Shown here piece by piece: positions 3,332 through 64,000 of a stretch of 64,000 bases of DNA. Under the pieces are notes generated by a model that was given only the letters and a program-made list of their open reading frames with translations, made no database searches and was not told the origin of the DNA. The DNA is taken from the NCBI GenBank assembly GCA_024704765.1, contig JAKMXF010000144.1, positions 558,001 through 622,000 on the forward strand, written 5' to 3'. The translations under genes and the position numbers were made by a program. How positions within the stretch are numbered: the stretch's first letter is position 1; each line of letters opens with the position of its first letter. This stretch comes from Oopsacas minuta. Its lineage: Eukaryota > Animalia > Porifera.

Positions 3332-6300
3332 TTGATCATCGCAAAGAATTTCATAACAGATAATAATATCAAAGAACCAGAGATTCACCTAGAGAGAAAT
3401 AAGAAATCTACTATATTCGAAAATCCACGAGGGTCTCCTGAAGGAGCCGAAAAAGAAGAATTTGTTCCAGTAATTGTGGATAGTGCTGATACTACAGTTA
3501 ATACAGATAGTACAATGGCTAACAGTAATGAAAGGAATGATTGGAGAACAAGAAAACGTTCTCCAGATGACCAATATGCAACATTTGTGCATACTGGGGC
3601 CCCCAACTATAGAGGCAGGGGAAGAAAGAAAAATAAAAAAGCATATAGTGACAGATATGGAGGTCACCGGGAATATTACTATGATCATGAAGAAAACTAT
3701 TATTATGACAGTAGAAGATATAGCTACGATAACGGTGTATATCATGATAGATTTGATAATCAGCATAATAAGCAGGGGAATAAAGATAAGGATAAGAAGA
3801 AACAGAGGCCTAATTCTTGTAGCACAGTTAGAATAGATGAAGATGGAAACCTATCCGACACTTCTACTCAAAGTGAACCTCCGTATAACGAAAGAAATAA
3901 TGTACAAGGAAAAATCCCATTCTCTAAAATTACTGGAGAAGTGAGAACTAAGGATAAAAGAGATATTCCACCCAAAGAGACCAGAGCTAATGAAAATAGA
4001 TCAGCTCAGCAAAGAGATAATACATCTAAAGGTGATGAAAATGATGGGAAAGGGAAGCTAGTTAAGACAGTAAATGATAATCCTAGTTCTGCCACAAACA
4101 AGGAGTCGAAGAAAATTATAGCTGCCTCTAAGACTAATACCAGTGGCAGTACTGCTGCCAACAAGGGCACTACTGTGCAGCTAGAACTGGCACAAAATAA
4201 AGTATCCGACAGTCCAAATCTTCCTGTACAAACTATGACTCAACCCACACCTATTTCCCCTCCTACTGCTCCACCGACACCTCCTATTCCTCCTACTGCT
4301 TCTCCTAAGACTAAACCAACTCAATCTCCAAGCTCCTCAAATACTACACTGCCTACTTCGACCATCGAAAAGAATGCTAATAAACATGTTGAAACATCAA
4401 ATAACCCCCCGAATAAAGAAGTTTCTATTGATAGTAAAAATTCTTCTCTACCCTCAAATCATACCTCTCCTCCAAAAACAAATACACCAGTAAAGCCTGC
4501 AGAAAATTCCTCTGATAACAATCAATCTAAAATACAGTCTAATAAGGTAATAAATACACAAGATGGATTATATACAATACCTCCTAAAAGACAGGAACCA
4601 ACTACAGATATTCCTCCGAAAGCACCAGATGATCCTCCTCCCCCAGTGTCTGGTAATCTTAATCCTGCTTATATACATACAGATAACGAATCTGACCAAC
4701 TATCGCCAAATGACGAATCCAATCCTCAAATGAACGAACCTACACCAAATAATCCTGAACCTACTAAACTAGAGAATCCGAAAAGCATATCTCCTCCTAC
4801 TAATATTTCCTCTAATGCTACTAATGTAACCGACTCTCAACAACCTTCATTATTTTCCACGTCAGGTGAATCCTATTTTAACTCATCTAACATTAATACT
4901 GGTGCTGGTATAGGACCCAATCCGTTTATGACTACACAAGAGGATCCTGGAGTCAACTCAGATACAAATATAGTTTCTATCTTTCCAAAACCCACTGTAG
5001 AACCTGTTACTCAACCTAATAGTGTTCCAAAAGAGTCTAGTTTACATTCTAACACCTTACAGACGATAGTTCCGATAGCTGTGGAAGATATAACAGAAGC
5101 CCATACAAATCAGAATTCTATTAATACACGACCATCTCAAGGTAATCTAACACCTCAACAATGTGCTATAGATCCATCTTCTACAATTTCAGCTTCTACC
5201 AAATCTTTGGTTTCTCAAGATACAAGTTTATTACCTGATAGTATGTCAAACGAGGATCCACCTCTCGAAGTGAAAGTAAAATCACTAACTGAAGAATTAG
5301 AAGCAACGAAAAATATAATCAGTGAATTTGAAACTAAAGAAAAAAACTCTTTGAGTGAATTTCAAAGAATTATAGATGAGAATGTTCGCATTACTAAAGA
5401 GCTAGAACAAAAGAAAACGGATATTCTTACAAAAGATCAAGATAAACAAAAGGTGTCAGACGAATTGCAAACAGAAAAACAACAGGTCATTAAACTAGCA
5501 GGTGAGAAGAAGAAAACGGTTGATGAATTGAAAGCCTCTAAAAAGGAATATGATAACCTCAAAACACAAGTACAACAATCTTCAATTGATCAAGCAACTA
5601 TTATAAGTGAACATCAAAGAGAAAACCAGCAGCTAACTGAAAAAATAACTAACCTCGAATCTAAATCTAAGAAAGTTGCAAAAGATCTTACAGATAAGGA
5701 AAAACAAATAACTCGATTAAAAGAATCTCATCTAATCGAAATTACAGAACTGAAAAAAGCAATGGATTCAGTCGCTGGAGACTCAGAAGCACTTTCTGGG
5801 ATGGAAAAGAATATTAAAGAAAAAGATATTGAACTGGAACAGGTTAAAAAAGAATTGCAAACAGTTCGAAAAGACAAGAATCGATTGGAAAGTGAGAGTA
5901 AGGACAAAATCCAGGAAATAAATCAATTGAAACAACAGCTAGGACAATTGGACAAAGAGCAAGCTAATTTGAAAGAGAATATTTCCCAACTAGAAAGAGA
6001 GATTGATGAAAACACAGCTATAATGAAATCGTCCGTTGATATAGAACTATTATCTAAGATAGAAGAGGTTTTTATCGGTTTGAGTAGCCAGAATCCTCCG
6101 TCTGAATACGCACTTGGGTCTCCAGACCGTGTAGAATGGTTAGTAGCAAGTTTGACTTCTTGGAATGCTGATCTTCTGGGTAAGATCTCAACTAATGAAA
6201 GTTTGCTGTTTGAAAAACAAACAGAAATCGATTCGAACAAAGAAGAACTGCAAACTATTCAAAATTATCTGCAAGAACAAATGCCTACTAACAAAGGTTC

Positions 6301-12318: not shown

Positions 12319-15300
12319 ATGAACAGAGAGCAGTCAAAGAGTTATTTTGAGAATAAGATCACAGCTCAACCATTTGAACAGGCAAATACTCAGCCTACTG
12401 TTACAGTACCAGACATAACACAGCCTTCTTCTGCTACTGCAGATCTTACTATCTATCAAACTAATGAAAGGCCATTTGTAAGAATATTTGTGTTTATTCC
12501 TTGCCTGATATTGATAATATTTCTAATTGTTTATTTTATAGAAAATATTCGCTGGTATAACAACTATCCCTCTTATCGTCATATTTCTGGTAAGTTATAA
12601 TAACAAAATATTGGGAGCTGTTTCATTATTATTACTATTATTATTATTATTATTATTCAGTATATCTAATTATAGGCATCTTTTGCAATCGTTATCTATA
12701 AAGGAATAGAAACGCCAACTTATCTACCTCTGCTCATCAACCTAATCCGTAAGTTATAGTATATACTGTACCAGGTTATACCCTCTATAATTGTCCCATA
12801 CCTAACCTTCGTTACCCCCTCTCTTCGTGAGAGAGGTACTACTACTATTACTTGGCCAGTATTTGTTAATGTCTCATCAAAACACACTTAAGCCTATAGT
12901 AATTAACTCAAATTATAGTAGTAGTCACAACAGAGTTCAATCAAGCAAGTACATACTAATCCATAGTCTATAATTGTTGTTGTGGGAGATTGTATCCCTG
13001 TGGAGCAGCTGGTAGAACATAGGGCTGTCCTGGGTATACCATAGGGGTTCCCTGTGGGAGGACCGTGGGGTACGTACCTGGCACAACTTGGAAAGGAAGG
13101 GGTTGCTCAGGGACAGTAGGGGGAGGTGGGTAAGCTGCTTGCAGGCTCTGGGGTGCTGGAGGGTAGGTAGGGTAGTTGAAATCAGGTATGAGAGAGGGAG
13201 GTTGTTGTTCCTGTGTACCAGGGGGAGGATATTGAGGGGGGTACTGCGAGGGTTGTTGGTACACAGGGAGAGCTTGCTCTTGTACTATTACCTGTGTGTG
13301 TCTGTACGCATCACTTGATTCTTTGAGTAGTTTCTGGTAGAAAGCCATAGCCTCTCTAAACTGTACATTTAAATCCATTAATCTATCATATTTGGATTGA
13401 TAATGCTGTATTTTCTGGTTAATTAATGGACGCATTAATTCACAGTGTTGCTCTAGTTCCTTCAATGTTTTATCTTCTACAGAGGCTTCTGAATGTGCAT
13501 CAGCTTTCTTCAACATTTCTAGAGTTAAATCTAGTTTCTCTTCGTTTATATCTATTTTCTTTCCGCGATCTTCTTTTTCTTTTCTCTCCTTAGCGCGCTC
13601 TTTCTTAGCTTGAGACTGTCCGGCTACATGTTTAGACACGAAATTCTTGGGAAATAGGCCTACCTTGCCTCTCAGCTGACCTTTCCACCAGTTTTCGTCA
13701 CTGTTGTCCAAAATCTCAATAACCTAACAATAGCAATAATATTACATACCCAAGGGACCGCGATAATTACTTCTATATAAGCGGGTATTCCGGCATAATG
13801 GGAGTTGAGTGTAGTATACAACAATAAATAAATTAAAGTAATTCCATCTAGACTATTTATACTTACATCCCCTGATTTGAAATTGAGCTCGTTTTCCTCT
13901 CCAGCATCGAAATCGTACAAAGCTTCATACCTATCTACATTTCCTTTCTTCTGCACACTCCCTCCTGTACCAATACCTCCTCCTCCTCCTCCTCCTAAGG
14001 ATAATCCCTCCATTGCTGGGTACATACTACTAACACCAGCTGTAGCTCCCAGTCTCTGTTCCTCTTTGAGAGAAGCTGCTATAGCTTTCTTCATATCCTC
14101 ATCTTCCTTCTTCTTCGCTACCTCATCAGTAGTCTTTGGAGGTTTATTTTCACCCCCTGCTTCCTCTGCATCTGGGAATTTTATTCCATCCCTCTTCAGC
14201 ATGTGATAAGCTACACATAATAAGTTCATGTCAGGATCGTGTTCATTCTCAGTCGCCCAATTATGTAAAAGCCCTCTCAATCTATCTCTGACTCTGTCAT
14301 GTAGCTGACTCACTTGTCCTAGGAGACGACGTAGCTCATCAGTGAACTCCCTCTTAGCCAAGAGGATCTGGAACTTCTTCCCACAATTACTGTAGCAAGC
14401 ATCTAGCAGTGTAATCGCCTTCATTGCTACATTGGGATTAGGGTTCCTCAGACGTTTCATAATAACGTTGAGGTAATTCTGTGGTGTGTTACCATGCGAA
14501 GCAGTAATCTGGTGACATATAACTATTATAGCTGTCCAATCCTCTTCCTGAGTTTTGTCACTGGTTACTTTTGTCACTTCATCTTCTATTGACGGCATTC
14601 TAGAATATTCTAAAGCTTAGACAATGGTATTATAATTATTGTAATATAATGTAAGGCATTATATTCTTATTACTTATGTATGTAACTATGGATTCATTGA
14701 CGATACAAACATTGTGCAATAATTATGATTTCACCCTTTCTGTATACAAATCTACACTGATGATGATGGGCAGATATTATAATTTTTGCCTTTTATAGTG
14801 ATAATCCTGGTCACTGGACTTGTTGTAAGTATTCTTTTTATTCTCTAACGATCTCATGTTGTACCTTAAAGTCAATATTATCCCCAATATTTGTATTTAC
14901 ATATGATATTATATATGTATATTATTTAGTACTTTTGGTATTTCAGAGGCACAATGGTAAGTTATAATTATGCATAAATACAAATATTCATAGACATACT
15001 TGCCAACCTGAGTGGAGGAAAACGTGGGACGTAAGGTACTACTTTAGCGGAACGTGGCATATTTGTATTAGACTGGACTACAAAAATGTGGGACAATTAA
15101 GGTCTTTGGCAAGTTTTGGCGGGACATTATCCTCAACACATGTCCGAAAAAACGGGACAGTTGGCAAGTATGTATATAATTTGTATCCATAAACTTTATG
15201 ATATACACATTATCCTAGTCCTACACCATGATCTGGTATATCGTAATCTACGCTATACTAACAGTATCGCAGTGTATTTTCATTGACATATTTGCTCTCG

Positions 15301-15437
15301 TGACGATATCACCTAGCTCTAGTGGACCCGCTACCCCCCATACTATTCCTGCTATCCCTATTAATACATCCAATACTACAAAGCATTTACTCTTTACTAA
15401 TCCAACTACTACTATATCACAATTGGATCTGTCATAG
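12319..15437 (+). CDS. Orphan small multi-pass membrane protein (183 aa, ~3 TM helices), 6 exons; hosts STAM in intron 3
   Basis: Exons 12319-12477, 12542-12589, 12676-12748, 14799-14824, 14930-14956, 15219-15437; all GT-AG (donors gtaaga/gtaagt), phases 0,0,1,0,0 join into one 552-nt frame: ...TNERPF|KIFAGITTIPLIVIFL|ASFAIVIYKGIETPTYLPLLINLIL|IILVTGLV|YFWYFRGTM|SYTMIWYIVIYAILTVSQCIFIDIFALVTI... No homolog recognised. Confidence 0.7.
12625..12657. repeat. (ATT)n microsatellite in intron 2 of the orphan TM gene
   Basis: About 11 ATT units with one ACT interruption. Confidence 0.9.
12968..14598 (-). CDS. STAM: Signal-transducing adaptor molecule (ESCRT-0; VHS-UIM-SH3-GAT), 2 exons, 495 aa
   Basis: Exons 14598-13867 and 13723-12968 (phase 0, gtaagt...ttag). 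VHS (EEDWTAIIVIC...NPNVAMKAITLLDAC), UIM (KEDEDMKKAIAASLKE), SH3 split by the intron (ALYDFDAGEENELNFKSGD|VIEILDNSDENWWKG...GLFPKNFV), GAT region, P/Q/Y tail. Confidence 0.95.
13749..13813. mobile_element. MITE remnant in the STAM intron (same family as 57123 and 58300)
   Basis: Shares caagggac-gcgataattacttctatataa with the copies at 57123-57264 and 58300-58479; ends ggagttgagtg, a degenerate TIR. Confidence 0.6.
14995..15172. mobile_element. MITE with 13-bp perfect TIRs, 178 bp, in intron 5 of the orphan TM gene
   Basis: CATACTTGCCAAC ... GTTGGCAAGTATG; internal repeated gggac motifs; no clear TSD, superfamily not assigned. Confidence 0.7.
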
Positions 15438-54080: not shown

Positions 54081-54410
54081 ATGGCAAGTGCAGGTGATTT
54101 GGAAACAAAGTTCAAGAAGGCAGCTGATTTTTTTAAGGCATACCCCAAAGGAGGTAAAATACAGCTCTCGAATGATCAGCAGTTAAAGTTCTATTCCCTC
54201 TTCAAGATAGCAACAGTTGGCAAGTGTAATATCGCTGCTCCTGGTGTAACTGATTTAGTAGGAAAAGCTAAATATGACGCTTGGAATGGGCTAGGTGATA
54301 AATCTAAGAACGATGCAATGACCGAGTACATACAGGCATTGATGGTTGTGCTCAATGAGCATGACAAGACTCCAGCTGAGGAAACCCTCCTCAAGGAAAT
54401 AGCCGTCTAG
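54081..54410 (+). CDS. ACBP: Acyl-CoA-binding protein
   Basis: FKKAADFF...SNDQQLKFYSLFKIATVGKCN...GKAKYDAWNGL...DAMTEYI; ATG 54081. Confidence 0.92.
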   Translation: MASAGDLETKFKKAADFFKAYPKGGKIQLSNDQQLKFYSLFKIATVGKCNIAAPGVTDLVGKAKYDAWNGLGDKSKNDAMTEYIQALMVVLNEHDKTPAEETLLKEIAV

Positions 54411-54643
54411 TTATTTTCTTTTCTCGATAGAATCTAGTTTTCATCCGTAAATTGTTTTCCTGTATAATCTATGTATCTAATGTTTGATCCGTATCTTTCT
54501 AGTGATATTCACCATGAATAGATTTATATTTGTACATTTTATTTGTGCAATTAAATCATGTAACTTAGTTCTATGTAATTTGTACTGCGAAACGTTCATC
54601 ATACAACGAAAATTATTTACAAATTTTGCTAAGATTTTCTGTA

Positions 54644-55375
54644 ATGTCAAATAGCAATTACGACTTCTTTGACTCGAAGGATTCTGCTAACTATCAATTC
54701 CATGTTCCTCTGAGAGAACTCAATCCGTACATAACATGTAGTCTTTGTGCTGGTTATCTTATCGACGCTACTACCATCATGGAATGTCACCATAGATTCT
54801 GTAAATCCTGTATAGTCCGTCATCTCCAGGCTAGCTCATCTTGTCCAGAATGTAATGCATTACTTAATGATTCTGATCCATTGTCCTGTCTTGCTTTTGA
54901 TAGAGACATACAGGATCTCGTGTATAAGCTAGTACCTGGTCTACAAGAGAGTGAAAAGAAAATGCGTACAGATTTCTATATTTCTAGGAGCTTAGAGATT
55001 CCTAACTTTAATATTTGGGAGAAAAACCCTTCAACATTCACTGACCCATCAGAAGTACATTTCCACAGTCGTGACGAAAAGATATCTCTTGAGATACTCC
55101 CTCACCACACACTCTCAAATTATAGAGAAGCTAATTTACAAACTTTATCAGATAAGTATACACGCTGCTCAATGCGTACTCTAGTCTATCATTTGAAAAG
55201 GTTTATTCACTGTAGGATTAAGGTCCCACACGCTTATGAATTAGAGTTACTGTGTAAGGATAACATTCTAAGGAAAGATACCAGTCTTAAAGAAGTGTAT
55301 TTACAATATTGGGCGACTACGGAGAAGTTATTTCCTGTTATAGTACACTACACTCTCAAAACTAGATTGTCTTAA
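54644..55375 (+). CDS. PCGF1: Polycomb group RING finger protein (PCGF1-like; RING + RAWUL)
   Basis: LNPYITCSLCAGYLIDATTIMECHHRFCKSCIV...CPEC, DRDIQDLVYKLVPGLQESE, C-terminal RAWUL-like region. Paralog identity uncertain. Confidence 0.85.
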   Translation: MSNSNYDFFDSKDSANYQFHVPLRELNPYITCSLCAGYLIDATTIMECHHRFCKSCIVRHLQASSSCPECNALLNDSDPLSCLAFDRDIQDLVYKLVPGLQESEKKMRTDFYISRSLEIPNFNIWEKNPSTFTDPSEVHFHSRDEKISLEILPHHTLSNYREANLQTLSDKYTRCSMRTLVYHLKRFIHCRIKVPHAYELELLCKDNILRKDTSLKEVYLQYWATTEKLFPVIVHYTLKTRLS

Positions 55376-55656
55376 ATTCGTATTTTATACTCATACGATT
55401 TCAATTCTTAGAGTGTTATTAATCGAAGAGTTTTGGCAATTCATAATTAGTTAACTTGCCAAAATTAAGGCCCCAGTATAGTGTATTAATGTTAGGTCGA
55501 ATTGTCCTGAGACATAATTTTTCTGAAAGACGGCACTCTGACCTACATTTTTGCAATTTTATGCATATAAAACTGACTCATAATTTTCGAGATATTATAG
55601 CCATGCTAAGTGTTTACAATTAATTATTTACTATGCACATGTTAGCCCACTTGTAT

Positions 55657-58600
55657 ATGTCACAACCTGATTCACCGGTATCACCGGACAAGGAGTCCCC
55701 TCCTCGCCTCTTTATAACACACATTGAAGCAGAGAATTTCAAATCTTACGCAGGCAAGAAGACAATTGGTCCATTTATACAGAAGTTTACCTGTATTATA
55801 GGACCTAATGGTAGTGGGAAATCTAACGTAATTGATGCTGTACTGTTTGTATTCGGATATAGAGCTAGGAAGATACGCTCTAAGAAGTTATCTGTGTTGA
55901 TTCACAAGTCAGCTGAGTTCCCTAATTTTCGTAGTTGTAAAGTTACTGTGTACTTCCAGCAGATTAGAGATATTGCTGATGACCAATACGAGGTGGATAT
56001 ACGTACAAATTATCTCAATAAAATATTGACTTATTTCTTGTATAGGTAATACCAGGTAGTGATTTTCAGGTATCACGAATTGCTCATCACGACAACACTT
56101 CTGAATACTTTCTAAGCGGAACTAAAGCTACTTACAGAGAAGTTACAGATCTGCTTAGAAACTACGGGATTGATTTAGATCACAATAGGTTTCTTATCCT
56201 ACAAGGAGAAGTATGTAGTTTTTAGAATATCAATCAAGTTAATTATTCATTTGATATGTAGGTAGAATCTGTTGCTCTTATGAAACCAAAGGGGCAACAC
56301 GAACATGACGAAGGAATGTTAGAATATCTAGAAGATATAATTGGTACAGCAGATTATAAAGATACTATTGAGGAATTATTTAAGGAATATGAAGAATTGC
56401 TTAATGCGAGAGGCGAAAAAGTTCATCGGTAAATGAAGATGACTAGCATAAATTAGATTTGTATTATTTGTATTATTTTAGATTAAAATTTGTTGAGAAG
56501 GAATTGAGTCAGTTAGAATCAGCAAAAGAAGAAGCAGAACAATTCTTGAAGCAGAGAGATAGAGTTGCTCTATCTAAGTATAAATTATTTCACAAAAACT
56601 TATTTGAATTGAAAACAGGTAGAGGAGGAGTTGATGAGAATTTAGAGGCATTGATAGTGGCGATTACTAAGATAGAAGATCAATCAGAAGAGGTAAATAT
56701 GATACTACGTACGTATTAATGTATTCATAACTATTTAGTATAATCTCTCTACACTATATCATATGAAGTGAGACGTGTACTGTATGCTTGTTTCTAGCAA
56801 TCAAATCTAGTCAAAGCAAAGCAGCATGATTTGAAGAAGAAAGGTAAGGTACTCGATAAGATGAAGGAAGCAGAGGAGAGTAAGACTGCTGCGCTGACTG
56901 AGTGTGAAAGAAGAGATGTAAAAGCTAGAGAAGATCAGAAAACAGTTAAATCTAATTTAAAATCATTCAACAAGACTCTTGAAAAAGAAAGACAGAAATT
57001 TGAGGACTTACAAACAGCTCCAGAGAGACTAACTAAACAGATTGAAGAAGGAGAGAAAACTAAAGTAATTATTGAAAAATCTCTCTATATAGAGGATCAG
57101 AAGTAAATATTGTAGGGATATGTAGTCAACTCCAGTTAAATCGAAGCTCAAGGGACCGGAGTAATTACTTATGGAATACGTGTTACTTTTATATTTTACA
57201 ATTTAAGAATTGGATACAAGCGGATATTCGATATATCCGTGTTCTATATAACAGGAGTTGATTGTAGTTTGTATAGAATGCAATAAATATAATTACGTAT
57301 GTATATAGATTGGAGCAGATAATGTCAGGGCTTAGAGAAGCTACGAGAGACTTACAGCAAGAAAAGGAGCAGAAAGTTAGTGTGCTATTACAAGCTAAAG
57401 TTAAAGTTAATGATGCTAAATCAGAGCAAGACATGGCTAGTACTGAGTATGACTTATACATGAGACAGGTCAGAGATCATGAAAGTCAAACAAAAGACAA
57501 ACAATTTAATCTGGAAGATTCTCAGAAGAAACTACAAGGTATGCTCCAAACATATTTCAGTGTTATTGTCATTTTAATAATTTTATTTTGACAATATAAC
57601 TATAAGGTAAATACCCGTTATAAGAATAACACGAGATATATCTTAATTTATTATGTGCTAATTGGTTGTAGTAATTACTTTACTCTTCTTGGGTAGTTCT
57701 TGACTGGATGTGGTTCCTTTCCTCTTACGGGTTGTTGGGGTAGAGCTACGACTTGATGTCTGCTTTGGAAATGATCCACTACCCTCTCCCTCATCCATGG
57801 AATATTCTAGAAAGTTCTCAACATCTGTCATACTACCAGACTCAGGTAGAGTCTCGTATTTATGTTTAATAGCTCCCCATTCAAATTCGGCAGATAGCAA
57901 TGCAGATTTCAGCTCCAATAGTAATAATACATTATTTCTGAGCACGTTAAATTGTGTAGTAACATTCTCTGTAGCAATTGGCTTAGTTCCTATACCCAAT
58001 TCATCTAGTAATTGCTCCATTGCTTTAGCTCGTTTGTTAGTCATTGTATTAGGAACTTTAAGTCTGTAACTACGGAGATATGGACCTGCACCTCTCTCCT
58101 CGATTATCTTATTCAGATGTTTTGTGATGTTCCCGCTTCTGTCTCTGTCTCTATCTCTATCCTTCTTACTCTTTTCCTTCTTCTTGCTGGTGCTACTACG
58201 TTTGTTCTTATCAGAACACCTATCGTCACTAATTTCTACTTGCTCTATTAATTTCTGTGCTGTTTGAGCTATTCTCTCTCTTTCCTATATACACATGTAC
58301 AGTTAACACCCGCTATATCGAAGCCAAGGGACAGCGATAATTACTTCTATATAATATATGCTGAATTGTTATAATCGATTAACTGTATGTTACTTTGAGG
58401 GTTTGGGACTATATTTGCACAATTTCAGACTTCCATATAAGCGAGTATTTCTATATATCCGTGTTCGTTGAGTTTACTGTATTTCAGTCTGAACTTACCT
58501 TCCTTCTATATTCCACCTTCTTCACTTCCTCCACTAGATAATCATGCTCTTCAATTTGTTTCTGAGTTCTACCAAATAGAAGTTCTAATTGCTCCTTCCT

Positions 58601-61600
58601 CAGCTTTTCATGTTCTACATCATATGCTACTAGTGACTCAGAGAGGTCTTCTCCTGGTATAGCCCTTAACTTGACTATACAGTTACATACTGTATAATAG
58701 CGATCCTTCAGCTCTTCAACTGATCTAGGGGGAAATCTGGCTATATCATACCTATCCTAAAAGAGAATCATTAATCACATTCCAAATACCTATATATCTA
58801 ACCAAGCTACCTTAATAATAATGAATCTCAGATCAAATCTATCACATAGCTCCAATAAATGCTTAGTCTCTTCCATGCTCCACTCAGAGTCCTCTAAATA
58901 TATTTTATATTCCTCTTCCGTATATTCAGGTATTCCTACTCTATCATTGTGTCTAGCGAATTGATATTTCTTGTTCTCCTCCCCAGCTCGTACCCAATGA
59001 TAGAGAATAGCATTGTCTGTACGAGCCTGGTTAATAAACGGTGTCCATTTCCAAGATCTAACTTTTTGAATACCTAATTTAGCTTTGACGTGTTTATACC
59101 CTAGACTGGTGTCTATTTCTATATCTGGGAGGAGTTTCTGTACTCCCTCTCCTTCTCTGAGAGCTTTTACTTCTCTGCTAGTACCGTCAGGTAGTAATGC
59201 AGCCCCAGTAGTTCTCTTCTTAACTCTCTTACTATGACCATGTGAGAGAGCTTGCTCTTTCAGACTTGTATTAGTTATTTCGCGGTTTTCTTCACCTTTT
59301 CTTCCGGCTAATATATCTTGAGCATCTTTTGCACTAGTCATTGTGTTATGTACTGGGATAGATACAATCAATATTTGTGAATATTTTAAGGGAAAAATAC
59401 AAAATTCTTAAATTTAACTACGTTTAATGAAATTTATATTTGTTTGCAGCAAACAGATCGCTTTGTGAAGAATTGAAACAAAAAGTTCCTAGACAGAGGA
59501 AGGAGATAGATAACTTTGAGATAGAGATTGATCAGTACACACAAATAGAGACTACATTAGCTCCTAAATTAGAGGCTACACAGCGTCAATTGGTGGAAGG
59601 GAGATCTTCTCTCTCAGCTCACAAAACTAGAGGTTATTGCAACTTATTTCATTAGATATTTATATATAGAGTGCATAAAGAACTGGGTTCATTTTATCTC
59701 ATAAGAAGGTTCAGTTACCTGAAGTAACATCTCTATGATTAAGATCCATAACCTTTGAATTGTAATCATTCAGGTGTACATATTTACTTTACCATTCTGT
59801 TGTTAGGGAAGTTGTTAGAGGGTTTAATGATGGCAAAGGAGGCTGGTCACATAAAAGGGATTATTGGCAGACTTGGAGATCTTGGTAAGTAGAACATAGT
59901 GTAACTAATGTTATCTATTTAATATACACCCTCATTCTACAACAGAAAATCAGTTAGAAAGTTTCTGTTAGAAACTATTGTACTTGAATTATAAATGTTT
60001 ATTCAATTTTGCTAAAGAAATCTTTTAATTCTAAAATGGCTACGAAAACTGTAATAAATGAGCCTCCTCGTGACATAATCACACCCCAGGTACAAGCGTC
60101 CCCAGATACTTCATCAGGTCCCAACAAGACCCTCTCCCCTACCCCCTGCATCCTAGTGGTCGGCATGGCGGGAGCTGGTAAGACTACTTTTGTACAGCGA
60201 TTAACTGCACATCTTCATTCTAAAGCCGCACCTCCTTACGTCATAAACCTAGACCCAGCAGTTCTTAAACTCCCCTACCCAGTCAATATAGATATCCGTG
60301 ATACAGTAAACTATAAGGAAGTAATGAAGCAGTATGGATTAGGTCCAAACGGGGGTATAATGACTGCATTGAACTTATTCTCCACTCAATTCGATCAAGT
60401 TCTACAATACATAGAGAAGAGAGCTAACGAACACAGTTTGGTTATATTCGATACTCCAGGACAACTTGAGGTATTCACATGGTCAGCCTCCGGTACTATA
60501 ATAACAGACACACTAGGTCTGACACTCCCTACCATCGTGGTGTATGTATTGGACACATCTCGTAGTGTAAATCCTACTACATTTATGTCAAATATGCTGA
60601 ATGCCTGTTCTATCCTATACAAAACTACTTTACCATTCATTCTGGTAATGAATAAGTGTGATATTATTGATAACGGATTTGCTGTGGAATGGATGAAAGA
60701 CTTTACTGTGTTCCGGCAGGCGTTATCCCAGGAGACCAGCTTTATGTCTAATCTTGTACAATCCATGAGTCTAGCACTAGAAGAGTTCTACTCTAATATT
60801 TCTAGCGTGGGAGTATCCTCACTGACTGGTGCTGGTATAAATGAATTCTTAGCTGCTGTAGATAAGGGAAGAGTTGAGTACTGGGATTATTTAGCCAGGA
60901 GGAAGAAGATTAGTGAGCAAAGAGAAAGGGAAATGAAGGAAAAGACGATTGACAAACTTACTGAACTCAAGAAACAAAGTGGAAAGGGCACCAAGCTTAA
61001 ATTAGGACTAGACCTCGCCGTACAGCCTGAATATGAATATGAAATAGAGGATGATATCTATGGTGTAGGGGGAGAGAGTCCTGATGAAGGGGACCTGGTA
61101 CATGATGAGGATTTGGATTTAGATGAATCTTGAATTTTACGGAATTTTGGAATTAATTATTAGCCCATCTGGATATTACAAATTTACAAAATATTTTATG
61201 ATAGCAGCTGAATGTATATGCCCAACTAGCAACTGATACACAGTAGAAACTCTATAAGCGGGGAGTGGGGCATAATTTAGAAAAAAATATGCCTCACGCC
61301 ATTGAAATTTTCCTCTCTAGGTGGGGAATTCAACGATAAATTTTCTTGAATAATCATTTTTGTGCTATATTTCCGTATTTATCGCTATGATGGAATGAAA
61401 TTTTTGGGTTTCTCAGGAGAAATTTATTTAACAAACAACTTTTGGGCATATTCTTATAATCAAATATCATTGAAAAACAGTCATTGGAGGAAGTGACATA
61501 TTGACTCGAAAATCTCAGCTTAAGACATTTACCTTCCACTTTTTCAAATATTGTACTACTTGTAATTATTGTATCCTGTTTCTCTAGCTTCCATAGACCA

Positions 61601-63635
61601 GAAGTATGACGTAGCCATCAGCACTGCATGTCCTTCTTTAGAGAATATCTTACTAGACACAGGTGATACCAGTGTACAATGTATCAACTTCCTGAAGGAG
61701 CATGATCTGGGTAGAGCTACTTTCTCAGTCTTAGAACGGATGGAAAGGAATAGAGCCCAGGCAATGAAACCATTTCACGGACCTGAGAACGTTCCCAGGT
61801 TATTTGATCTTCTTCATGTGAGTTGTATTTATCAATAACGTATTTGTGGTAACTTAGATTGTCCATTCTAAACTCTACTCCTTTTCAGATACAAAATGAT
61901 GCATATATACCTGCGTTATATTTCGTAACACAAGACACACTAGTTGCTAACAACCTAGAAGAAGCTACACGTATCGGTAAGCTAAACAACAACAATTTAT
62001 TCTAGTTAGTTGTATATTTATTGGTGTATCTATCTTGTCAAGGTATGGGGATAGGCACTGAAGGGAAGAGATATAGAGTTGTGACACTGAGTGGAGATGT
62101 GGTGGATAAGAGTGGTACTATGTCAGGGGGAGGGAAACAGGTTTCTAGAGGAAGAATGTCAGCTAACATTCAACAAGAATTCAGCCCTGTGCAGGTTCTT
62201 ATCTTTTTCATTGTTCTTTCCTTCCTAATTACTTTCAAGACGAAGAATTGCTACTAATACGCATAGGCGCCGAAAGTGGGAGGGTCAGAGAGGATAGGTA
62301 CCCCTACGCCCTAGTATTGAGGGAGCGTATACCTAAACTAGTAGTCAATGAGGTACATCCCCTGAGCTTAGGGAGGCTTCGCAGTCATGCTAGTAAGTAA
62401 GAATTGAGTATGACGTCATAATTTTATGAAACTAATCAAAAAGGCAAGGTTCGTCTGGGTCTCGAACCCAGGACCTTCTGCGTGTAAAGCAGACGTGATA
62501 ACCACTACACTAACGAACCAAGATTCTTATTAATTCTTACTGTTATGACTTTTGTAAAAACATCTTAAGAAAGTTGCTACAAAATAATTGAATGTTTTTG
62601 TTTTAGAAATACACAAATTTGCTAGTATTATTCTATAGAGAGATAAGACTGACGTTGCGAATGTGTATGTGTATAGTAGCAGTTTTGAAAACACTGACTT
62701 ATCATTGTATTTATGTCCCTATTTATGTCCAATCTGTATATAATATGCATTATCATAAGTTCTGGCACAATCTATTGTTAATATTTGCAAACATAATCTC
62801 TGCCAGAGAAACTTGTGTTGATAATATGTAATTCCTAAACTGATTAGCTTACCGGCCTTTCGGATACGCGTATTAGCCAAGTAAAGGAAATGTCAATCCA
62901 AATAGGATACAAGATTAGTGTTGCACGTAATCGCATTTATAACTGCCCTTATTAAATGTGTTACTTGTTTTATCTATTCCTCGTTACGCTACGTGTATAG
63001 AATTGCCCTGTGATGAGCTGTATTACAGCATATTGCTCCTACTGAGTGTGTACTTGATGAGGTGTTATACTGAGGGCTTATGATGCAAATTCGTTTGCAA
63101 AATATATCTAATTAATGGTGGAAAAATATAATTTTTGTTGTGGTTTGTGTTTACTTAACCCATTATTTGGAATTTATTTTCCACTCATTTTCAGATTGAA
63201 AGTCTTGAGAAAGATACAGCTAAGCTAAAGCATGAACTGGAAGAGTATCAGAAACGCAAGCGAGTAGCTGAAAGCAAGTTATCTCTCCTACAAACTGAAG
63301 TACAGGAGAATGAGAGTAGATTACAGAAAGCTAGCCTGGATATTGACTTCTGTTCTGCACAATGTGAAGTTTACAAAACCCAGCTGAATGAGCTCATGAG
63401 TAACAGAGTTACTGTGGATCCTAAGGAAGTAGAGAGGCTAGAGAAAAGATACAAGGAATGTCAGGACGTGTATAATCAAATACATACCAAGTTCTCTAAG
63501 TCTGAAGCTGAAGTAGAGAAGTTAGATGAACGGATTAATGCAGTAGGAGCTGATAAGGTTCAAGCACAGCAGAAAAAAATTAATTCTGTCAAGAAAGAAT
63601 TGGATGATCTGAAAAGTAATATCTCTAAAGCAAAT
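55657..63635 (+). CDS. SMC4: Condensin subunit SMC4, at least 12 exons, 3' part beyond the window; hosts DMAP1, GPN1 and tRNA-Val
   Basis: Exons 55657-55992, 56046-56210, 56262-56428, 56482-56692, 56798-57102, 57309-57538, 59450-59632, 59807-59884, 61588-61817, 61889-61976, 62043-62194, 63195-63635; phases all compatible. ENFKSY, Walker [37 protein letters not shown]|VE, hinge GIIGRLGDL|[29 protein letters not shown]...SGTMSGGG. Confidence 0.95.
57123..57264. mobile_element. MITE in SMC4 intron 5, 142 bp
   Basis: tagtcaactccagttaaat ... atataacaggagttgattg|ta; internal sequence shared with 58300 and 13749. Confidence 0.7.
57658..59341 (-). CDS. DMAP1: DNA methyltransferase 1-associated protein 1 (SWC4/EAF2), 3 exons, 471 aa, nested in SMC4 intron 6
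   Basis: Exons 59341-58811, 58756-58499, 58284-57658 (phase 0, GT-AG, 1416 nt). [17 protein letters not shown]...LYHW, SANT domain [24 protein letters not shown]|DRY...[40 protein letters not shown]-like [10 protein letters not shown]. Confidence 0.93.
58300..58479. mobile_element. TA-flanked MITE, 180 bp, filling most of DMAP1 intron 2
   Basis: TA|CAGTTAACACCCGCTATATCGAA ... GAGTTTACTG|TA; family sequence shared with 57123 and 13749. Confidence 0.72.
60036..61133 (+). CDS. GPN1: GPN-loop GTPase 1 (XAB1), intronless, nested on the SAME strand in SMC4 intron 8
   Basis: [83 protein letters not shown]; acidic tail. First ATG 60036. Confidence 0.96.
62438..62442 (-). terminator. RNA polymerase III T-run terminator
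   Basis: TTTTT on the minus strand, 5 nt downstream of the tRNA acceptor stem. Confidence 0.65.
62447..62519 (-). tRNA. tRNA-Val (UAC), in SMC4 intron 11
   Basis: GGTTCGTTAGTGTAGTGGTTATCACGTCTGCTTTACACGCAGAAGGTCCTGGGTTCGAGACCCAGACGAACC(T): perfect 7-bp acceptor stem, anticodon arm TCTGC-TTTACAC-GCAGA, T arm CTGGG-TTCGAGA-CCCAG, intact A and B boxes. Confidence 0.95.
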
Positions 63636-64000
63636 GTAAGTTTGTAAATTCGTACAATACCAAGTTTTTTGGTTTGGGATTCGCTCTAATGTCAATATTT
63701 CTTATACTTTTATAACAAACAAACAACAGGTGTAAACATTTCACCATATTTATCCACACAAAATGAGCTTAATATAAAATTTATTATCATGCAAGAATTC
63801 ATTCTCAAGAAATAATGTTTGCTAATTAGTCTTCATTCACAGTTTGAGGTAAAATGTCTTCCATTTCTATTCCGTGGTCATTCAGCAATATTCATTCGTT
63901 CATGAATTCTATACTTTCTATGGAGATAGTATCGTTTTGTAGCTAATATTATCCATGGTATTAATGAGAGAATCACAACTATTGCTGTAATTGAGTATGC

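Follow-up and report, generated by a model that had tools for sequence, protein, structure and literature searches.

The classic animal examples of nested genes are human NF1, an intron of which hosts EVI2A, EVI2B and OMG, F8, whose intron 22 hosts F8A and F8B, and Drosophila Gart, which hosts a cuticle gene. The guests in these cases are complete intronic genes, mostly antisense to the host and often intronless. tRNA genes are commonplace in introns of protein-coding genes, and human SMC4 itself hosts the miR-15b/16-2 cluster. For glass sponges, the genome paper on Aphrocallistes vastus reported 2432 nested genes (12.4%), many of them conserved between A. vastus and Oopsacas minuta, two genomes with extensive microsynteny (PMC10282587). 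The glassin gene was given as one nested example, and it was pointed out that automatic annotation overlooks nested genes, only 83 being annotated in O. minuta (PMC10282587).

The window analysed here is a 64,000-nucleotide stretch of the O. minuta genome, identical to positions 558001-622000 of contig JAKMXF010000144.1, and all coordinates refer to it. An earlier note made from this sequence had placed three genes in introns of SMC4, namely a spliced DMAP1 antisense to the host, GPN1 on the host strand and a tRNA gene, and both the structure and the identities were borne out. The hosts NF1, F8 and Gart have very large introns, whereas the host introns here consist of the guest plus only 100-450 nt on each side. 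As in human, SMC4 is the host of an intronic RNA gene, but the guests and the lineage are unrelated and the two arrangements are not homologous. The locus is like the nests of A. vastus in that the genome is compact and the guests are mostly single-exon genes in introns of longer hosts, although the SMC4/DMAP1/GPN1/tRNA locus is not described in that paper (PMC10282587). Set beside those nests, it combines three kinds of guest in a single host and has two host exons between divergent guests. It is not a new kind of system. We consider it very probable that there is one functional SMC4 gene, that three of its introns each carry a complete, independently functional gene, and that the locus is an instance of genome-wide nesting. 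At the sequence level, the following results established the exon structure and showed which four genes are present and that each is intact.

SMC4 was resolved into 12 GT-AG exons on the + strand, from 55633 or 55657 to 63635, which when joined gave 2610 nt, or 870 codons, with no stop. The two starting points correspond to the first in-frame ATG (55633) and to the start of the public model KAI6656566.1 (55657); similarity to relatives began at 55642. Exon 1 (55633..55992) encodes the Walker A head (Pfam SMC_N, 3e-29), and exon 2 (56046..56210), bounded by AG/GT and in frame, had 82-91% amino acid identity to relatives. Six further exons continued the joined frame and had a counterpart in the related loci, namely exon 3 (56262..56428), exon 10 (61889..61976), exon 11 (62043..62194) and the coiled-coil exons 4 (56482..56692), 5 (56798..57102) and 12 (63195..63635). 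Exon 6 (57309..57538) ends in a split codon (phase 1). Exons 7 (59450..59632) and 8 (59807..59884) both lie between the divergent start codons of DMAP1 and GPN1. The hinge begins in exon 8, which aligned to residues 2-26 of the mouse SMC4 hinge structure 3l51_B, and continues in exon 9 (61588..61817), which matched the SMC4 hinge at 1e-18.

The identity of the host was assessed from its domains and closest relatives. The gene encodes an N-terminal Walker A head and a long coiled coil, and among the SMC paralogues its hinge is nearest to that of SMC4; the eukaryotic hinge matches were SMC4 chains only (1e-18 to 2e-15), and bacterial Smc matched at 1e-3. The best full-length matches were named SMC4, as was the first public piece at NCBI. 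Compared with the full-length SMC4 P0132 (1302 aa), the joined frame gave a single blastp HSP, in which amino acids 24-868 corresponded to residues 65-907 (E 1e-178). P0132, the closest full-length SMC4, is a crustacean-like transcript contig and is unsuited to the comparison of intron positions. A profile search with the full-length SMC4 and the 12 window exons found the 488-aa O. minuta model described below and no hexactinellid full-length SMC4. The gene extends past the end of the window. In relatives, the C-terminal head was found complete downstream on the same strand (L001, L002, L003, L006), and an SMC_N match was also present in a chimeric public model downstream in O. minuta.

The guests occupy intron 6 (57539..59449, 1911 nt), intron 8 (59885..61587, 1703 nt) and intron 11 (62195..63194, 1000 nt), all on the + strand and bounded by GT..AG. 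The corresponding junctions 57538^59450, 59884^61588 and 62194^63195 each had a pyrimidine-rich acceptor, and the three junctions proposed in the earlier note stood as given, with GT...AG sites, the open 870-codon frame and an exact fit of the hinge. Across the GPN1 intron, exon 8 ended at residue 26 of 3l51_B, the split codon fell on 27, and exon 9 was aligned over 29-101, its unaligned first residue being placed at 28. The same join was equally exact on a second SMC4 hinge, 9f5w_B, at 639|642. A search of a large protein collection with exon 9 for transcript-derived fragments spanning exons 8 and 9 returned only four genomic exon fragments from hexactinellids, and an ungapped repeat search across the region gave nothing relevant.

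In the public O. minuta annotation, SMC4 is divided into at least four models, including one of 488 aa, one of 78 aa, one of 312 aa and a chimera that joins the C-terminal part to an LRR gene and ribophorin II. Taken at face value, these separate models would mean that the pieces are separate genes, or that separate transcripts are trans-spliced together. We regard this as very improbable. The split codons that end exons 6, 7 and 8 make sense only if the exons are joined, the end of the 488-aa model consists of 17 codons of intron 6 read through, and GT/AG is kept at the exact junctions in all relatives. A split would also break the hinge inside the conserved GRLGDL-x-IDxKYD motif.

For DMAP1, GPN1 and the tRNA gene alike, the whole coding sequence was contained in a single host intron. 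DMAP1, in intron 6, is on the - strand and has three coding exons (59341-58811, 58756-58499 and 58284-57658) encoding 471 aa; an identical 471-aa model exists in the public annotation. Both domains of the DMAP1/SWC4 family were found. PF16282 (SANT_DAMP1_like) is split between exons, exon 1 covering the profile up to position 51 and exon 2 from 53 on, and PF05499 (DMAP1) is in exon 3 (3e-32). An AATAAA lies 6 nt past the stop. In the window and its relatives, the DMAP1 start is 60-248 nt from exon 7 and the stop 28-318 nt from exon 6. Because these spacers are so short, the DMAP1 transcript and its UTRs may overlap host exons, in which case the nesting would not be strict.

The tRNA-Val gene (anticodon TAC) in intron 11 lies at 62447..62519 on the - strand, antisense to SMC4. 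It was found with ARAGORN and scored 66.3 bits against Rfam RF00005 (gathering score 29). A run of five T residues 5 nt downstream is a putative Pol III terminator, and the gene has the features of a eukaryotic tRNA-Val.

GPN1 (GPN-loop GTPase 1), in intron 8, is a single exon of 365 aa at 60036..61133 on the + strand, and the public annotation has a 365-aa GPN1 at the identical coordinates 60036-61133. PF03029 (ATP_bind_1) matched at 5e-80 over positions 1-236 of 240, and the P-loop, GPN, DTPGQ and NKCD motifs are present in the ORF. All named matches were GPN1 (XAB1/Npa3), at 55-68% identity, and the protein is closer to GPN1 than to GPN2 or GPN3. The ATG at 60036 is 151 nt past exon 8 in the window. 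A TATAAAT motif at 59990..59996 (+ strand), 40-46 nt upstream of this ATG, belongs to a block conserved in a six-species alignment, and the sequence separating the block from the ATG was not conserved in that alignment. The distance from the GPN1 stop to exon 9 was 108-454 nt in the six species, and a canonical AATAAA or ATTAAA was absent from this interval in five of them. Over all six, one hexamer occurred in 1591 nt versus ~3.7 expected by a rough estimate from base composition, a difference that is not significant. With regard to GPN1 3' end formation and read-through of the host, so short a spacer, mostly without a canonical hexamer, counts against the proposed arrangement.

These features bear on how GPN1 is expressed, which would be from the host strand. 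It could be cut from the SMC4 pre-mRNA in the manner of an operon, by spliced-leader trans-splicing upstream of its ATG and internal polyadenylation. The orientation of GPN1 along the host strand and the lack of a canonical hexamer in five of six species are in keeping with this, as is a report of a ~37-nt trans-spliced leader in A. vastus, also a glass sponge. We hold it to be unlikely, as the conserved TATAAAT block followed by a non-conserved stretch to the ATG is more in line with a promoter than with a trans-splice acceptor, and no more than 4% of the long reads of A. vastus carried the leader. GPN1 made from the SMC4 pre-mRNA would amount to an intron operon and, if true, would mechanically couple the output of a Pol II assembly factor to condensin transcription; a milder form, in which SMC4 exons 7 and 8 double as a bidirectional promoter for DMAP1 and GPN1, was included in the same low estimate. 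The TATAAAT block would instead be the promoter of an independently transcribed GPN1.

The comparison with related species drew on seven loci (L001-L007) in five other assemblies, with contigs reaching 1.67 Mb. Since GPN1 identity is 75-85% and synteny is shared, the assemblies probably come from further hexactinellids. The gene order, strands and splice positions of the nest recurred in 7/7 loci, each with all 12 SMC4 exons and with AG/GT at the projected boundaries. Intron 6 was 1627-2512 nt and carried DMAP1 in 7/7 loci, intron 8 was 1334-1530 nt and carried GPN1 in all, and intron 11 was 569-1653 nt, with the tRNA-Val gene in the same intron and on the same strand in L001-L007. Introns 6, 8 and 11 were the only consistently long ones, with the exception of intron 4 in L005 and L006 (1584 and 929 nt). 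The joined frames of exons 2-12 were open in L001, L003 and L005, with pS of 0.67-0.82 versus pN of 0.11-0.17 and a dN/dS of ~0.07; synonymous sites of the relatives were saturated relative to the window. At the sequence level, the arrangement was shown to be kept under purifying selection in the five other assemblies.

The earlier note had named long genomic reads showing a mis-join as a refutation, and had asked about the arrangement in related species. That the nest is an assembly artefact, through a mis-join or a collapsed region, is exceedingly improbable given the identical layout in seven loci of five independent assemblies. Synonymous saturation together with the shared layout therefore excludes mis-assembly and makes the nest old.

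In the arrangement that we propose, RNA polymerase II would transcribe SMC4 through the three guests, and ordinary cis-splicing would remove them with their introns. DMAP1 and GPN1 would start at their own promoters in the ~690-nt divergent interval that holds SMC4 exons 7 and 8, GPN1 probably using the conserved TATA-like block that precedes its ATG by ~45 nt. The tRNA-Val gene would be transcribed by Pol III from an internal promoter, with termination at the T-run. On this reading, special functional coupling of housekeeping genes is not the explanation, and nesting of this kind is typical of compact glass-sponge genomes. The view that the locus is an exceptional interleaving of housekeeping genes was not supported, as nests in glass sponges take in about 1 gene in 8 and are in many cases conserved (PMC10282587). 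An intronless nested gene is what is usually seen in this type of genome, because most genes there are single-exon, and GPN1 in this form is compatible with a retrogene origin. The Nematostella GPN1 has introns, has unrelated neighbours and is not nested.

The chief gain is the corrected SMC4 gene model, as nesting as such had been known before to be frequent in glass sponges. Counts of core genes as present, absent or truncated in the O. minuta genome can be misled by nests, and the annotation error is relevant in that this genome was published with the claim that key metazoan core genes are missing. As an example of nesting, the locus is clean and deeply conserved: same-strand, antisense spliced and Pol III guests are found in one essential host, and two host exons are squeezed between divergent guest starts. 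It is a handy test case for how premature termination and transcriptional interference are avoided in compact genomes.

The region from 55.6 to 63.7 kb is AT-rich (31-43% GC), and short ORFs are tightly packed within it. Pfam searches placed an SMC N-terminal head at 55633-56049 and an SMC hinge at 61569-61838, both on the plus strand. Sequence reading with a script check gave an SMC4 gene of 12 plus-strand exons in the window, each flanked by AG and GT. Joined, the exons form 2610 nt, or 870 stop-free codons, and amino acids 24-868 of the product aligned with residues 65-907 of an SMC4 reference of 1302 aa (P0132) in one HSP (E = 1e-178). About 40 further full-length SMC4-like proteins aligned likewise, and the named full-length best relatives in the profile search were all SMC4. 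Eight introns are short (51-206 nt); only introns 6 (1911 nt), 8 (1703 nt) and 11 (1000 nt) are long, and these are exactly the three to which the earlier note had assigned guest genes.

Two intronless genes on the same strand, encoding a PCGF-type RING finger and an ACBP, lie directly 5' of SMC4 (54081-55375). Only about 260-280 nt separate the PCGF stop from the SMC4 start, an adjacency kept in all relatives.

The junction across intron 8 was compared with solved structures containing the SMC4 hinge. Exon 8 aligned to residues 2-26 of 3l51_B (mouse SMC4 hinge) and 615-639 of 9f5w_B (a 1305-aa chain), and the exon 9 alignments start at residues 29 and 642, respectively. Residue 27 (3l51_B numbering) is encoded by the split codon and residue 28 by the codon that opens exon 9. 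Because the two exons abut on the hinge, the 1703-nt interruption falls inside the conserved motif GRLGDL-x-x-ID-x-KYD with no residue lost or gained. This fit is the strongest single test of the junction.

The guest in intron 6 is DMAP1, both halves of which were found by Pfam on the minus strand. Its three exons (59341-58811, 58756-58499 and 58284-57658; 471 aa) are all phase 0 and are separated by two GT-AG introns (54 and 214 nt). Exon 1 ends at position 51 of the SANT_DAMP1_like profile and exon 2 starts at position 53, while exon 3 carries the DMAP1 domain (3e-32). Intron 8 contains GPN1, a single plus-strand exon of 365 aa with its ATG at 60036, which Pfam matched as a full GPN-loop GTPase ORF. 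It shows the P-loop, GPN loop, DTPGQ and NKCD motifs, and its named relatives are all GPN1 (55-68% identity). The guest in intron 11 is a minus-strand tRNA-Val(TAC) at 62447-62519, the sole tRNA that either ARAGORN or Rfam found in the whole window; a T5 run lies 5 nt downstream, as for a Pol III terminator.

SMC4 intron 5 and DMAP1 intron 2 share a 57-nt stretch at 81% identity (57190-57244 and 58410-58466), and 31 nt of the latter intron (58324-58354) are 97% identical to 13750-13780. These stretches may represent a short interspersed repeat residing in introns.

Public models of DMAP1 (471 aa) and GPN1 (365 aa) agree with ours. SMC4 is divided among at least four public models (window 55657-64000 and beyond; 10001-21935 of L011, the O. 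minuta contig stretch that includes the window end). The profile search match KAI6656566.1, 'Structural maintenance of chromosomes protein 4 [Oopsacas minuta]' (488 aa), begins with the Met at 55657, comprises exons 1-6 and then runs through 17 codons of intron 6 to a stop. A 78-aa model covers exons 7-8, and a 312-aa model covers exons 9-12 with the tRNA intron already spliced out. The fourth, of 1388 aa, is a chimera of LRR_8, the SMC4 C-terminal SMC_N head and ribophorin II.

The closest GPN1 relatives (P0001-P0005) are 75-85% identical, and seven loci on long contigs (L001-L007) were fetched from the five ENA assemblies bearing them. Gene order and orientation are identical in all seven: PCGF, SMC4 head, DMAP1 (minus), GPN1 (plus) and SMC4 hinge. 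The C-terminal head exons were seen further downstream on the SMC4 strand in L001, L002, L003 and L006. The tRNA-Val(TAC) occupies the minus strand of the homologous intron in 7/7 loci. When the 12 window exons were projected onto each locus, all were recovered in order at 51-95% amino acid identity, with AG and GT at essentially every boundary. Only two projected acceptors were not AG (E5 in L006 and E11 in L007), perhaps reflecting small indels, and the DMAP1-hosting intron 6 has an apparent GC donor in L002 (7754-7755) and GT in all others. Introns 6 (1627-2512 nt), 8 (1334-1530 nt) and 11 (569-1653 nt) are long in every relative. The joined E2-E12 frames are open in L001, L003 and L005; against these, pS was 0.67-0.82 (saturated) and pN 0.11-0.17. 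SMC4 dN/dS was about 0.07 where computable, and GPN1 behaves alike. Since layout, exons, splice sites and open frames recur in related loci with saturated silent sites, mis-assembly is excluded. These substitution patterns indicate that the nest is older than a lineage split so deep that silent sites have become saturated, and point to purifying selection on host and guests alike. The nest does not date back to the animal ancestor, because Nematostella, a cnidarian, has an intron-containing GPN1 among unrelated neighbours.

The SMC4 intron after exon 12 contains LRR/EGF receptor-like genes in O. minuta (L011), L001 (14269-17607), L002 (13106-18760) and L007 (13237-15085). In L003-L006 this intron is without them, and the C-terminal SMC4 exons come directly. 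The SMC4 guest set therefore varies between lineages, the DMAP1/GPN1/tRNA set being older. Intron 4 measures 1584 nt in L005 (4744-6327) and 929 nt in L006 (5780-6708), as compared to 49-234 nt elsewhere, and in L005 it includes an unassigned 105-aa ORF (4845-5162); either an insertion or an additional guest may account for the enlargement. In L007, the 3' portion of exon 12 recurs in inverted orientation (15196-15429; 74% amino acid identity), with mirrored LRR matches, close to the end of the 26.7-kb contig; this resembles a palindromic contig end, probably an artefact of that assembly.

Transcription of SMC4 would run through all three guests; these would leave with their introns by ordinary splicing and be expressed independently of the host. 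A block that includes TATAAAT (59990-59996, 40-46 nt upstream of the GPN1 ATG) is conserved among six species, as are two further short blocks; the stretch that separates the TATA-like motif from the ATG is unconserved. An AATAAA lies 6 nt past the DMAP1 stop. The spacers are tight: 60-248 nt from the DMAP1 ATG to SMC4 exon 7, 28-318 nt from its stop to exon 6, and 108-454 nt from the GPN1 stop to exon 9. The divergent DMAP1 and GPN1 start codons are 694 nt apart, with SMC4 exons 7 and 8 filling 261 nt between them. Guest UTRs, above all those of DMAP1, may consequently extend into host exons. Between the GPN1 stop and exon 9 (61134-61587 and its homologues in L001-L007), AATAAA and ATTAAA were absent in 5/6 species; in these spacers of ~65% A+T, the single hexamer observed does not fall significantly below the roughly estimated expectation of about 3.7. 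GPN1 could conceivably be processed from the SMC4 pre-mRNA, because spliced-leader trans-splicing occurs in glass sponges, though we consider this route very improbable beside independent expression.

The Aphrocallistes vastus paper reports 19,578 genes, 2432 of them nested (12.4%) and many of these nests conserved, together with 12,409 single-exon transcripts and 848 synteny blocks shared with O. minuta; it puts the low O. minuta figure, 83 nested genes, down to annotation method (PMC10282587). The O. minuta genome paper makes no mention of gene nesting, and our literature search found no paper treating SMC4, GPN1 and DMAP1 together. The nest described in the earlier note is borne out by the exons, junction fit, intact guests and same layout in relatives. 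Its reading as a nested structure holds; its view that such interleaving of housekeeping genes is unusual is not supported. With one gene in eight nested and most genes single-exon, housekeeping guests and an intronless GPN1 are expected, and the SMC4 nest is an unreported yet typical member of a published glass-sponge class.
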